Positions 19,342 through 25,300 of a stretch of DNA of 64,000 nt are shown piece after piece (positions within the stretch are counted from its first letter, which is position 1; the number at the start of each line of letters is the position of its first letter). Origin of the DNA: Oculina patagonica (taxonomy: Eukaryota); contig NC_135763.1 in assembly GCF_052425735.1 (NCBI RefSeq), forward strand, positions 5,518,001 to 5,582,000, read 5' to 3'. The notes beneath the pieces were generated by a model. The model was not told the DNA's origin. It made no database searches and saw only the letters and a program-made list of their open reading frames with translations. Position numbers and translations under genes: made by a program.

Positions 19342-22300
19342 ATGTGTCTTCGATTATTGTGGAAGCTAAAAATATTTCTTCTCATAGTTTGGATTTCAGC
19401 TGTCTCAACGTTAAGGTTGAAATCAGGTTAGTGATACCTTCGTTTATCTTCGCCTACAATTCACTATTCATTCTACTAATTGTCTTTGATACAAACATTT
19501 AATAATTTACAAGTAGAGGCGTGCTAAACACTTTGACCAATTTGCTGTTTTATTGTTTTCTTTTTTCTTCCTTCCTTTATATATAAGCAATTCAAGCATT
19601 ATCTGGGCCCAACTATTCCAAACGAAAACGTTCCTAATATTTAATGCTATATACACACAAAATTACCTATTTGTTAATTTGCTACAGCCTATTTGAATAA
19701 GGGTTATTTTAAATTGATGGATCTAAAGTCACCCGTTGCTGTTGTGACTACGCATTTAATCTCAATATTTCGTCTGGCGTACTCGTTCTACCAACGCGAA
19801 ACACGAATAATTATATTTGTGATATTTTTTAAGTAAAACTGATCTAACATGAACACAGTGTAAGCATTTTCTAGAGGGCAGGGAAATGGTTTAACAGATT
19901 TGTTTGGTGATTGCAATAATTTCCGCAAATTTGTCGAGGTCAAATCAAGTACAAACACGACAGAAATATGCTACACTAGCTAATAAACACTTCTGCACTG
20001 CCTTAACAAACTGCCTTAACAAAATATGCTACACTAGCTAATAAACACTTCTGCACTGCCTTAACAAACTGAATTACAGCAAGTTTATTGTAATGAATTA
20101 TTTTACTTGAATACATTTTCTTTCGCTCTAGCAAAACACCATAAAGACCATAAAGCATCGCGGCGTTACCATGTCAACGATTACCACAACAGCTCTCTGG
20201 CTTCAAGACGAACTACGTATCGTATAAACATGCCGATGAAGGTGGCAAAACTCATTCTCCCTCAAATCACAAATAAAAACCAGGAAACAATCATCAGAAT
20301 ATTTCCAGACAAATCAGCTCCGACGCAAAATCAAAGCGGGAGTAATTACATGTTAAGCCTCAGTTATAAGAAGCTCAATGACGATAACCTTTCGAACAAA
20401 CTCAAGGTTGGGAGGCGGGCTTGCTATTACGGAAAAGGCCCAGGGTGCTGTTCATCTTGTTGTCCTTCGTGTAAGTACTTATCTTTCTGTTTATTGCCCA
20501 CGTTCGCTCTGTGGCACATTCCTGCAGGGAATCATTGGGACATCTTTTGTTTAACACAACTGCCATGTTTCCCTGCATGTACGTTTCATGGATGCAACTA
20601 GGTACTGTGCATGATATCATGTTTACTTGACTCGTTAGTCTCCAAAATATACATGTACTTGGCCTTTAAATTTGGCTGTCCTGTTGCTTTTCTGCTTTGT
20701 TTTAGTTTGCTTAGCACTTCCACTATTATTCTGCTTAACGAATATCTAAATTCAATTTACAATAGATTACTGCCAAGAGGGAGGCGCGGTGGCCTTAATG
20801 GTTAGCGCGCTCGGCTCCGAGTCGAACGGCCCGGGTTCGAGACCTGGCCGGGGCGCTGCGTTGTGTTCTTGGGCAAGACACTTTACTCTCACAGTGCCTC
20901 TCTCCACCCAGGTGTATACATGGGTACCGGCGAACTTACTGCTGGGGGGTAACCCTGCGATGGACTAGCATCCCATCTAGGGCGGAGTAGCAATACTCCT
21001 AGTCGCTTAATGCTACAGAAACCGGGATAAGCTCCGGCTGTATGGGCCACTTAGGCTCGGACACAGACTTTCCTATTTTACTGCCAAGAGCAAACATTGA
21101 AACCTGGTTTTTAATACTAAACTACACCAAGATGAAAAACTAGTGAAAGCAGACCACCAATCCTTCATTGTGCGTGGAGTTTAAATACCTCCTACTGATG
21201 TCTGATAATTTATATTTAGGAGTTTTATAAACATATTAAAGCAAAAAAACAATAACAACACCAACAACGAGTTTTTATATGCTTAAATCGCGTGAACGAA
21301 AGTAATCAATTCTTGTAGAATAATTCCCGCCTTATGGTCACCCTTGCCCTTGTATAATTACAACTAAGTAATAATAAAAGTATATTTATTTCTTGTTTTG
21401 TTTTGTTTGTTGCAGCAATGTGTAACCCTTCCATGTTACCAGGTAATATTACTAAATAAATGTGTTAAAGAAATAAAAAAAAAAAAACGCAAGTATCCAC
21501 CATCAGTTTACATGTCTGGATCAAACTTGTTCTCAGGGCTTTTCCAGGGGAACGAGGTTGTGCTTGGATGACAAAGAGGGCGTGGCTTACTTACCAAGCC
21601 TTAAAATGTTATAATCACCTCCCCCGAGGTAATAATAGCATCATAAATCGAGTTTCTCGACCAAAACTTGATAGAGGACGCGTGTAACCTAAGCCACGTG
21701 CTTTATGGAGCTATAATAAACTCGAACTGACCAATCATAGCGCGTGCATTTCTCCAAACATTGTATAAAGATATAAAGCTACTAATAAAATAAAGTAATA
21801 ATGAGCAGAACAAACGTAGGAAAGAGTATTTACTAACTCATAAGAAACCAGAGCGTTTTATGAGTTTTGCATAATTAATGCTTTTGCAATGAAAAGCGAA
21901 ATCAGGATTTGCCTTCACCACTAGCTGGCCACCGACACTAACATGTATGGTTGTTTTACGTGAATAGTTGCTTTATATTGTATACTAAAACAGTGATAAT
22001 ATTGCGCTAAAGGATTACTTTTGACTAGTTTATACCTGTCAAAAATAACCATTTTTCTCGCGCGCATTGTTCGGAGGTGAATAGCCTCCAGCGAAATATC
22101 GCGGAATATCGCCTGATACTTAGCCGACAAGGCCGTAGACCGAGTTGGCTAAAATCGGACGATATTCCGCAAGATTGAGCAGGATAATTGTTTTATTACT
22201 CAACAAATTGTCAAGGAAACACATTCTGCAGAAAGAAAAACTATAATTATGCAGCGCTCTACAAGACTTCAGACGAATCTTCGCATTCTACATATATCGC

Positions 22301-25300
22301 AGGATATCTGTTATGTACGGATGACAGATAACGTTAACATTTTGACCATATATTGGCAGAGCGCACATTTGTTGAATAATAACAAAGGATATTCGGAGTT
22401 TGAGTACGTAGCCAATCAGCGCGCGCCAAAAACGCTATTCACTGTTTAACAAATGGTAAACGTCACAGCGTGCACTATTGAGTTACAGATGCACGCGGGA
22501 GGTTGCTAAGCACGAAAGATGCGTAAGAGTCGCCCGAGGCGATAGCCGAGGGCGACTCTAGCTTCTTGAGTGCTTAGCAAACCTCCCAAGTGCATCTGTA
22601 ACTCAATAGTGCACGCTGTGACGTTTACCATTTGTTTTATAGCACAACTTTTAGGCGATTTATTAAAGTTTCTTTGAGGTAAAAGTGCGCGCGCTTATTT
22701 AAACAATTGCGTGTAGTGCTCGCGTAAGCGCTGACGAACACCCAAAAGAAAAAAAACAAACAAAACAAAGTTTTGAATTATTTCAAACTTGCATTATACC
22801 TCAAAGTCTTCAGCGTTATGGAAAAATAGGTTTCTTATGTTTAGCTTTTCAAATTCACAGGAAAATCGAGAAAACAAGTAAAAACTCGTTAAGTAGTGGC
22901 ACTTTCTTGTGCCATGTCGCAACAGATCAGCGCGCGCGCTCAAGTTGAAGCATACGTCAGCGTGCACCCATGGGCAAATAGTAGACGCTAAATTAACCAA
23001 TCAGAACGCGCGCTTTACTTTAGTTGTGCTATAATTTAGTATATACCAGAAACCCATAAGGGTTGAAACGTGTAACGCGCGCGCACAGCGTTTGAATATT
23101 CATTTTGCTAAGTACCATATTTGGAATCACGAAGAATTTGTACGCGAATGCTTTATACACGTAATGGCACACGCAACATAATTTTTGGTTTTGCGGTTGA
23201 ATTGAATTGAATTTCGACCTAAACACCGTAATTTTCTTACAGAAACTAAAGAAATACAAAAAAATTAACCAAATTTAACTTTATTCAAGCAAGCTTGTTC
23301 AAAAACAAGATTACGCCATCAAGCGCGAGCTAGCGACGCTGTGAATTTAATCCAAATATAGTAATTTTGATTGGTTAAATGTTACTCGTGATTTTCCAAA
23401 TATGGTACTTAGTGTAAAAGAATGTGCAAACGCTTTGTACAATGTGAATCATAGGGAGTTACACGTTTCAACCCTTATGGGTTTCTGTATATACTTATAT
23501 CTTCTACTTATTCGGCGCAAATTAGCATGTGAATATGATCAAATGCGCCTACATCAAGTTAATTTAAAACTTAAAAAGAAGAAAAACAAACAAATTTACA
23601 AATATTATATGAAGATATATATAAGAATACAATATATAGTAATTCACTAAATAAATTCACTAAATAAATCTTCTTCTCTACCTAAACTGATTTTACTTGA
23701 CGTTTTTCAGGATCGTGCGTCTGCTGTCCGAGTAAGTAACAGTTCTTAATTAGTTGCTGAATATTTGCAAGTTTAGTTATTGGCCCTCTGATTACCGAAG
23801 TCGTTTAATAAGTAATGTTAATCATCACACATAAATTATTTCATGCATATAGCTAAAACCTGCGCAATTTAGCAGAATCAACACATAATTTTTATATCGA
23901 TTCAAAGCCCATCGCGCGGTGAAGGGTTACACAATTCACAAATGAATTCGAAGGTTACGAGCTTGAGTTTCGTTGAAGTTTGCGATGATCTCTTTCTCTT
24001 TCGTGTTGTTAGTGCCGGTCGACATATTAGCCACTATTTACTAATTTCATATTGTTATTTTTTTATTGCATATTAAACTTCGCTTCAGTTTGTCCACAGC
24101 CACGTAAGCATGTTTTTGCTTTGCCTAACACCATAGCTATAGCTTACATACTTTTATATCTATATATTTTAATATAATGCTCAGGAAATGCCAGTAGAGT
24201 ACAATCGTGTATTAGTATTATATTATAAAAAAGCATATACATGGACTCAACTGAAATATTTTCAGCTAGTAAAATTACATTGAACAAGAGGAATTAAAGC
24301 TTCATATACTTTGATCTCTGCCCTTAAATAAGTACCGCCGATTGTTAAAATTAGTTATCTTATCTTATCTTATGACTTTTTATTCGAAAACGTTTGGTTT
24401 TTATTTGAACATATTATAGCCTTTAAACCTTAAAAAAAACATAATTTAATTGCTACCTTTATTATTCACAAAGTTATTAAAAGCTTTTGTTAAATTATTT
24501 TCAGCTTGCTGCTGCTGTTGTTGTTCCAGTTCACCACCTCCACCACCCCCTCCCCCCAAGAAGCCACCGCCTCCCCCTTGCCCTATGGTTTGTCTACCGA
24601 TTTGCCTTCCCTGCCCCAAACCACCTCCGTGCCGCCCAATATGTATACCCCGCCCGATAATCAGGCCTTGTCATCCCCCCCTGCCGCATACCCGCACCAC
24701 CAGTGACTGGACCGATCAATGGTCCATGCCTCCCGGCACCACCCATCACGGGACCGTGCCATCCACCCTGTTTACCTCAGAACCCAGTTCCACCCGTTCC
24801 GCTTCGTCCTGCTCCACCAATGATCGTAAACAGACCAGTTGTGGTAGATCATCCCTTAAAGGGCCCTCCAATATTCATAGGTAAGTTACGGCGTTATTTT
24901 AGTTGGTTGAAAAAGTTGGTGTTCTGCTAATTGGGTTCATGTAGCATTACTTTAGAGTAACGTTACTTGATGTTATTTTTTTAGTATTGAATATCACATG
25001 AACTCGAGTGCTTTTTATTCAGCTTAATTAGCTTCTTAGTTATCCCGAGTAAATTTATCTTTTTTTTGTATTAATACGTTATGTTGTGTTTTTGTCATAT
25101 TATGTAAATCTAATAAAGCGTATGTTATTGTTGTTGTTTTGCAATGGGGAATAGACCTGTTTCGCATGGTTGGTTTGTTTTCCCATTGCAGACGATGTGA
25201 TGCTCTCTAGAGAATTTTTACTTTTATCCACTTAAAATTATTCATTCATATACACGCGACTATTTTAAAATTTAAAAGCAAGAATTCTCAAGAGTATCAT

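Follow-up and report, generated by a model that had tools for sequence, protein, structure and literature searches.

Gene B of Oculina patagonica: a stony-coral gene with three cysteine-bearing micro-exons and a polyproline-rich product that may belong to a disulfide-linked matrix

The DNA considered here is a 64,000-nucleotide (nt) stretch of the Oculina patagonica genome (assembly GCF_052425735.1, contig NC_135763.1, positions 5,518,001 to 5,582,000 of the forward strand), referred to as the window; it is eukaryotic, comes from an assembly of 529 Mb, and has a GC content of about 38% and introns dense with high-copy repeats. On its + strand lies gene B, a transcribed, single-copy stony-coral gene of eight coding exons (19342-28014) whose predicted product is about 433 residues (aa) long. 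The main interest of this gene resides in a verified chain of three cysteine-bearing micro-exons, together with a protein design that resembles that of Hydra CPP-1 without its cysteine-rich domain (CRD). The eight-exon model was built by mapping the mRNAs and proteins of relatives onto the window, and its features are as follows.

18966-19341 (start approximate), + strand: part of exon 1 in the 5' untranslated region (UTR); supported by the L007 and L008 mRNA contigs of relatives, whose 5' UTRs match 18966-19427.
19342-19426, + strand: coding part of exon 1, with the start codon, the signal peptide MCLRLLWKLKIFLLIVWISAVS... and a phase-1 donor; matches the starts of open reading frames (ORFs) P0009 and P0005.
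20132-20470, + strand: exon 2 (339 nt), with a basic stretch ending in the dibasic site ASRR, the N-domain TYRINMPMKVAKLILPQITNKNQETIIRI...SLSYKKLND, and GRR-ACYYGKGPGCCSSCCPS.
21416-21442, + strand: micro-exon 1 (27 nt), phase 1-1, encoding SMCNPSMLP; borders ttgcag/CAATGT...TACCAG/gtaata.
23711-23731, + strand: micro-exon 2 (21 nt), phase 1-1, encoding GSCVCCP; borders ttttcag/GATCGT...GTCCGA/gtaagt.
24089-24103, + strand: micro-exon 3 (15 nt), phase 1-1, encoding ICPQP; borders cttcag/TTTGTCCACAGCCAC/gtaagc.
24505-24880, + strand: exon 6, with six Cys, poly-Pro, a CX3C/Pro-rich stretch and a Pro-rich stretch ending in VVDHPLKGPPIFI.
24675-24681, + strand: 7-C homopolymer within exon 6, giving a +1 reading-frame shift in the window as assembled.
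26883-27012, + strand: ShKT exon (exon 7), entered in phase 1 and left in phase 2; blastn identity of 88% to L008.
27705-28014, + strand: exon 8, the last coding exon, with the tail DENAALLRR...RAKLNRALAQII... and the stop codon TGA at 28012-28014; supported by tblastn and blastn of P0005, L007 and L008.
To about 28190-28240, + strand: 3' UTR, with AATAAA at about 28172 and about 28214.

Transcription of gene B is documented by spliced contigs, among which X1 record 1 (1196 nt, near-identical to the window) aligns to 19300-19424, 20130-20468 and 24505-24880, contains the junction 19426/20132, and extends about 134 nt upstream of 19300. The 5' UTR block is also kept in L003, a TARA coral scaffold that is 71-83% identical over conserved blocks. 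Exon 2 is covered by X1 record 1 and by X11 record 7 (20130-20470), and it is represented in alignment A2 of 18 orthologous pieces; similarly, exon 6 is covered by the spliced contigs X1 and X2, by the DNA contig X16, and by the orthologues P0001-P0005 and P0009. The mRNA contigs of relatives (L007, L008 and L009) have intact ORFs of 407-419 aa and match the window exon for exon, and phase 1 is used at every junction from exon 1 through the ShKT exon. Searches of the same genome with the N-domain and with both halves of exon 6 for paralogues returned only the gene itself. The first-pass annotation had placed the gene at 20405-24880; what it took as the first exon comprises no more than the final ~65 nt of the 339-nt exon 2, and the signal-peptide exon lies further upstream at 19342-19426, whereas its expectation of a following ShKT exon was borne out at 26883-27012.

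The same annotation had proposed micro-exons of 27 nt at 21416 and of 21 nt at 23711, and both are real, as judged from their AG/GT borders, their phase 1-1 structure, their matches to the L008 and L009 mRNAs, their presence with splice sites in L003, and the length of the X1 transcript. Micro-exon 1 is identical to the L008 mRNA at 24 of 27 positions (blastn 92%), and micro-exon 2 matches the same mRNA at 95% by blastn; the latter is 27 nt long (GSCICCPRP) in two relatives, namely L003 (about 9733-9759, with splice sites) and L008 (coding-sequence positions 454-480). In X1 record 1, exon 2 (ending at 20470) and exon 6 (starting at 24505) are separated by exactly 63 letters, and because this number equals 27+21+15 and not 27+21, a third micro-exon of 15 nt is indicated; the read alignments cover pieces of about 31 nt or more, and the X1 support for the micro-exon joints is therefore a letter count rather than a direct display. 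Micro-exon 3 is identical to the L008 mRNA at 15 of 15 positions, where it joins the homologue of micro-exon 2 to that of exon 6, and it recurs with AG/GT splice sites in L003. Among the 15 open, phase-compatible AG...GT candidates of that intron, it alone carries such support.

The L008 and L009 records, Logan contigs from another coral, are spliced mRNAs; their ORF (P0009) runs for 407 aa without interruption and reads ...CCPG-SMCNPSMLP-GSCICCPRP-ICPQP-PCCCCCCC... through this region. The spliced product proposed earlier was accordingly right in SMCNPSMLP and GSCVCCP, but it missed the ICPQP exon, and the residue before the Cys run is P, not T. In X11 record 7, there are apparently about 74-75 letters, not 63, between exon 2 and exon 6, an excess that may come from a 27-nt micro-exon 2 or from a difference in poly-Pro length in that organism. 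An Acropora-type mRNA (P0005) contains a different micro-exon set (MNVDPMSICNPG, CPVCPTP), which, together with the differing length of micro-exon 2, implies that micro-exon content varies among coral lineages. The three micro-exons of the window encode 1, 3 and 1 Cys, respectively, and since each number is odd, the skipping or gaining of one micro-exon would change both the number and the parity of the cysteines. Separately, in the more distant scaffold L013, phase-1 Cys/Pro micro-exons of 36, 27 and 9 nt are predicted in the corresponding intron at 5430-5465, 5713-5739 and 5977-5985, with good polypyrimidine tracts and GTAAG donors; RNA evidence for these predicted micro-exons was not found.

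Exon 6 is broken as assembled. Its first half (CCCCCC...RPCHPP) and its second half (CRIPAPP...PPIFI) stand in different frames on either side of the 7-C run, and the phase of the ShKT exon is compatible only with the second frame. All relatives read CHPPCRIPAPP without a break, and four runs (three spliced and RNA-like, one DNA, with four organism labels) have, in four of four cases, one letter fewer than the window within 24645-24880, a result obtained as a letter count over that interval and not as a located gap. Given this agreement among relatives and runs, the surplus C most probably arose as a homopolymer error during assembly. Metagenome contigs of JGI were also scanned for exact matches to the 6-C and 7-C forms; none was found, and thus no independent check was obtained. 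For further analysis, the window product was read with X at the break or as two pieces, and intact natural orthologues were used as search queries. The first-pass reading of PCHPPC...PCHPPC had switched frame silently at the 7-C run; as assembled, the first PCHPPC is unreadable, and the motif is recovered in the orthologues. It is unlikely that the copy in the window is a genuine pseudogene or null allele, in which the extra C would be real in the sequenced individual and the truncated product would have no ShKT domain. The frame is indeed broken as assembled, and on exon 6 the four runs show about 1-4% divergence from the window, none being demonstrably the assembled individual; the extra base, however, is absent from all four runs, including the DNA run, and from all orthologues, and the sequence downstream of the break still has a ratio of nonsynonymous to synonymous substitution rates (dN/dS) of 0.165, intact splice sites, the ShKT cysteines and the stop codon. 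Moreover, assemblies often retain single-base errors in homopolymers, and similar ones may be present elsewhere in the genes of this assembly.

The predicted protein consists, in order, of a signal peptide, a basic stretch with a dibasic site, an N-domain, a Cys-rich stretch, six Cys, poly-Pro, a CX3C/Pro-rich stretch, a ShKT domain and a tail. The N-terminal hydrophobic leader (MCLRLLWKLKIFLLIVWISAVS), judged by eye to be a signal peptide, is kept in P0009 and P0005. After it comes a basic stretch, rich in His and variable in sequence, which closes with a dibasic site of the form ASRR, ASKR or AARR (A-S/A-R/K-R) in every row of the 18-row alignment A2 that covers the position. The nearly invariant N-domain of about 60 aa (TYRINMPMKVAKLILPQITNKNQETIIRIYPD...SLSYKKLND) belongs to no Pfam family; an AlphaFold model of it computed from 18 sequences contains about 55 residues at a predicted local distance difference test (pLDDT) score of 70-80, arranged as a helix and a hairpin. 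The Cys-rich stretch is assembled as ACYYGKGPGCCSSCCPS + SMCNPSMLP + GSCVCCP + ICPQP + PCCCCCC, and the Cys run is followed by poly-Pro of the form SSS-P8-KK-P5. Between the Cys run and CPMVC lies PPPPPPPPKKPPPPP, which is kept in orthologues, and the Pro-rich stretch that continues from there has cysteines conserved in position (CPMVC, CRPxC, PCHPPC, GPC, GPCHPPC). The conserved motif RPVVVDHPLKGPPIFI precedes the ShKT domain, which is encoded at 26885-27010 and scores 33.6 bits on Pfam PF01549 (gathering cutoff 20.9; E 5.8e-8) over the full profile (1-37) with all six Cys; the corresponding match in the orthologue P0003 has an E value of 3e-6. The tail contains the invariant segments DENAALLRR and RAKLNRAL-QII and may, with low confidence, be modelled as helical. 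In three orthologues, the middle 160 residues consist of 16-17% Cys and 35-37% Pro. The six consecutive Cys, the poly-Pro, the absence of Gly-X-Y and the ShKT domain that follows had all been described in the first-pass annotation, and all are present in the product; likewise, the leader, the Cys/Pro middle and the motif scan indicate a secreted protein without a collagen helix and with several CX3C motifs. A weak Pfam match to Chorismate_synt (E 0.017, below the cutoff) was discounted, and a feature search of the ESM Atlas returned generic ShKT clusters only, at 0.75-0.77, which is below the level at which such matches were counted.

Orthologues of gene B are found in many stony corals and are under strong purifying selection, as estimated from a dN/dS of about 0.1. 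In the comparison with L008, dN/dS rises from 0.09 upstream of the break to 0.165 downstream of it. Values of 0.05-0.08 were obtained for the N-domain (0.05), for the micro-exon stretch and for the poly-Pro/CX3C stretch, and the cysteines that follow the poly-Pro keep their positions in six scleractinian sequences. The window product is 81% identical to P0009 and 67% identical to P0005. The nearest named orthologues come from the stony corals Desmophyllum pertusum and Acropora digitifera: KAJ7385827.1 (P0003, 'ShKT domain-containing protein') of the former is a true orthologue with 79% identity over 203 aligned residues, the public model of which starts inside exon 6, and LOC107335553 (P0012, 'uncharacterized protein') of the latter is a true orthologue that agrees with the gene B product in leader, N-domain and first Cys stretch, the public model of which runs into the intron after the first micro-exon. 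Neither of these models shows the full architecture, and both are broken by the micro-exons because gene finders miss exons of 15-27 nt; the two entries are thereby a concrete example of annotation loss from exons of less than 30 nt. The remaining family members in public data are anonymous genomic ORFs and Logan contigs. As a whole, the family is represented in public data by fragments only, no Pfam family beyond ShK is matched, and no paper on the family was found, a literature search on the run numbers and orthologue accessions, on ShKT with proline-rich coral proteins and on the skeletal matrix having yielded nothing specific. The present work thus recovers a conserved coral gene family of which public annotation has only broken forms, and the corrected model allows the protein to be searched for in cnidocyst, mucus and skeleton proteomes as well as in coral single-cell atlases.

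The family extends beyond these close relatives. A distant orthologue in the scaffold family L012-L015, with about 40% identity, contains, in an unchanged order, the N-domain, a CCPGCC-type stretch, poly-Pro (16 P), CPMVCLP, PLVVDPPEKGPPIYI and the ShKT domain. Upstream of gene B in the window lies a gene with several VWA exons (about 6930-13118) that ends with a ShKT domain at 16712, and this order of a VWA...ShKT gene followed by gene B is kept both in L003 and in the much more distant L012-L015 family. No homologue in Hydra or sea anemones was detected by an all-against-all HMMER scan and two word-indexed searches, which are weak on low-complexity, micro-exon genes.

The first-pass annotation had called the product minicollagen-like, and this comparison holds in design (poly-Pro, Cys-dense flanks, CX3C) and fails in the domain that defines the family. 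Minicollagens have a Gly-X-Y helix with polyproline and, at the termini, CRDs of the pattern CX3CX3CX3CX3CC on either side, following a cleaved charged propeptide (PMC4863159; PMC12549020), and their CRDs polymerise via disulfide reshuffling (PMC4863159). Hydra CPP-1 contains a polyproline stretch between two CRDs and no triple helix, and it undergoes spontaneous disulfide crosslinking into a matrix (PMC6910907). The coral protein shares with minicollagens a probable signal peptide, an upstream dibasic site at which cleavage may occur, polyproline beside Cys-rich flanks and CX3C motifs; it differs in being much longer, in its unrelated domains and in lacking both the Gly-X-Y helix and the CRD pattern. 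Regular-expression searches for CX3CX3CX3CX3CC, in the canonical form and with spacings of 2-5 residues, found no match in the window product, P0009 or P0005, and no run of four or more Gly-X-Y triplets, compared with a central tract of about 12-16 repeats in minicollagens, occurs in the three full-length sequences. A sequence comparison of the Cys/Pro middle with solved chains was negative as well: the set of PDB chains searched with phmmer, which should include any deposited CRD chains of at least 20 residues, gave nothing at E<=10.

In design, the gene B product is closest to Hydra CPP-1, without being homologous to its Cys-rich domains. Both are secreted proteins with continuous polyproline bordered by Cys-rich sequence and no triple helix, disulfide crosslinking being a conjecture in the coral case; no sequence homology between them was detected. 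The two canonical six-Cys CRDs of CPP-1 have no counterpart in the coral protein, which contains in addition the N-domain, the long CX3C/Pro-rich stretch, the ShKT domain and the C-terminal tail. A canonical six-Cys CRD on both flanks, as in CPP-1, was not found; the poly-Pro is present and the spacing of the flanks varies, the Cys beside the poly-Pro being arranged as CX3CX3C (CPMVCLPIC) in the window and as CX3CX2CX2C in relatives. The RR site that had been read as the end of a propeptide does exist (GRRAC, directly before the Cys stretch), but it is missing in the Acropora-type clade (FKDPC, FRDPQC), and the conserved dibasic site lies about 70 residues further upstream, before the N-domain. 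With no CRD pattern, no Gly-X-Y and a GRR that is not conserved, membership in the minicollagens was rejected.

The best available reading of gene B, to which a probability of about 45% is given, is that of a disulfide-linked, polyproline-rich protein of a secreted matrix, because it combines a secreted poly-Pro rod with Cys-dense flanks that contain CX3C units. After secretion, the protein could be cleaved at the dibasic site by an enzyme of the prohormone-convertase type; the middle 160 residues would form extended segments resembling polyproline II, while their many cysteines would make both intra- and intermolecular disulfides to yield a covalently linked component of the secreted matrix, with the ShKT domain and the N-domain acting as interaction modules. 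Vertebrate high-sulfur keratin-associated proteins and small proline-rich proteins, which are Cys/Pro-rich, contain CC and CxxxC, and form a disulfide-crosslinked matrix, are comparable by analogy only, since they come from an unrelated lineage, are intracellular and contain no ShKT domain. Should the reading be correct, gene B would show that the 'polyproline rod plus cysteine cross-links' design of the nematocyst wall was reached a second time by a non-homologous protein, and it would clearly illustrate how micro-exons can supply a structural protein with cysteine units.

Several observations weigh against this reading. The cysteines after the signal peptide number 34, 34 and 32 in three orthologues, an even total in each case, so that all of them could pair within one molecule. 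Across all pieces and full-length orthologues, ShK is the only Pfam family; phmmer of the Cys/Pro middle against all PDB chains gave nothing at E<=10; the N-domain model has no credible Foldseek match in PDB or in the AlphaFold Database clusters (best E 0.25-0.7, template-modelling score <0.3); and the AlphaFold model of full-length P0009 from four sequences (pLDDT 34) is unusable. To these the missing CRD must be added. As for the place of deposition, the cnidocyst wall or tubule appears the less probable, and another secreted matrix (mucus, mesoglea or the skeletal organic matrix) the more probable. The overall design speaks for a role in the capsule, as do the ShKT module and the conserved dibasic site. 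Counting against a core role there are the absence of a CRD and the failure of the weak searches described above to detect homologues outside corals, and the lack of a detected homologue in Hydra and sea anemones argues against a core cnidocyst component in particular.

Other accounts of the same protein have been considered. It could be a precursor of secreted peptides, cut at ASRR, at LLRR after the ShKT domain and, in some lineages, at GRR, so as to release the ShKT peptide and/or an amphipathic tail peptide with a signalling, antimicrobial or toxin-like function, the Cys/Pro part being a spacer. ShKT peptides with propeptides are common in cnidarians, the A-S/A-R/K-R site occurs in every A2 sequence that covers the position, LLRR is invariant in alignment A1, and the ShKT domain and tail are both conserved. 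A spacer, however, would not be expected to have a dN/dS of 0.06-0.15 and conserved Cys positions, as the Cys/Pro middle does; moreover, the Lys-Tyr dyad of channel-blocking ShK toxins is not evident by eye in the ShKT domain, of which there is only one in a protein of more than 400 aa. A peptide precursor seems an improbable account. The domain resembles other cnidarian ShKT (PF01549) proteins in being one canonical six-Cys domain on its own exon, and it differs from them in that it forms a minor, C-terminal part of a large protein rich in Cys and Pro and is not a free toxin peptide.

A divergent but true member of the minicollagen/CPP-1 group, placed in the nematocyst capsule wall by degenerate CRDs, is even less likely. 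The poly-Pro between Cys-rich stretches, CPMVCLPIC (CX3CX3C) right after the poly-Pro in the window, the upstream dibasic site, secretion and the ShKT domain would all suit such a protein, ShKT domains being frequent in nematocyst proteins. In Nematostella, 'minicollagen-like' proteins with incomplete features have been described (PMC12549020), which is a further point in its favour. It has to be set against these that no CRD appears in any of the three full-length sequences even under relaxed spacing, that Gly-X-Y and matches to solved CRDs are absent, that the CX3CX3C of the window becomes CX3CX2CX2C in relatives, and that the long conserved N-domain and tail have no minicollagen counterpart. 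Least probable is a secreted metal-binding (metallothionein-like) or redox-buffering protein that would use CC, CCxxCC, poly-Cys and CHPPC as thiolate or His ligands. A middle with about 17% Cys, CC pairs, a run of six to seven Cys and two conserved CHPPC motifs is compatible with it; on the other hand, the signal peptide implies the secretory pathway, in which cysteines are normally oxidised, no metallothionein or other metal-binding family was matched in Pfam, and the poly-Cys run is replaced by CICCSCC or CCIPSC in other lineages.

A broader extension of the disulfide-linked matrix reading is doubtful at present: stony corals, and with them at least one relative further away (L013), might have independently evolved a disulfide polymer of the minicollagen/CPP-1 kind on a module of N-domain and ShKT, drawing its crosslinking cysteines partly from a chain of frame-preserving phase-1 micro-exons (27, 21 and 15 nt here, other sizes elsewhere). 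If this were true, changes in parity would tune intra- versus intermolecular bonding, and a new class of cnidarian structural cross-linkers would have been missed by current annotations.

The surroundings of gene B contain further elements. Exons with a ShKT pattern occur five times on the + strand (16712-16831, 26888-27007, 31331-31450, 44227-44346 and 47261-47380), and among the four that accompany the exon of gene B, two score as its relatives. An Rfam search of the window returned nothing. Intron 2 contains, at 20778-21060, a very high-copy element resembling a short interspersed nuclear element with a tRNA-like head, in which ARAGORN found no tRNA; its contig depth sums to as much as about 1.7 million in X16, the DNA run, and to tens of thousands in those that are RNA-like. 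In intron 3, two elements resembling hairpins or miniature inverted-repeat transposable elements (about 22440-22640 and 23047-23490) have long inverted arms; in every run their depth is high and their internal joints are numerous. The intron between exon 6 and the ShKT exon contains a minisatellite with a 61-nt period (about 25841-26090), in which four identical 41-aa ORFs lie 61 nt apart on each strand.

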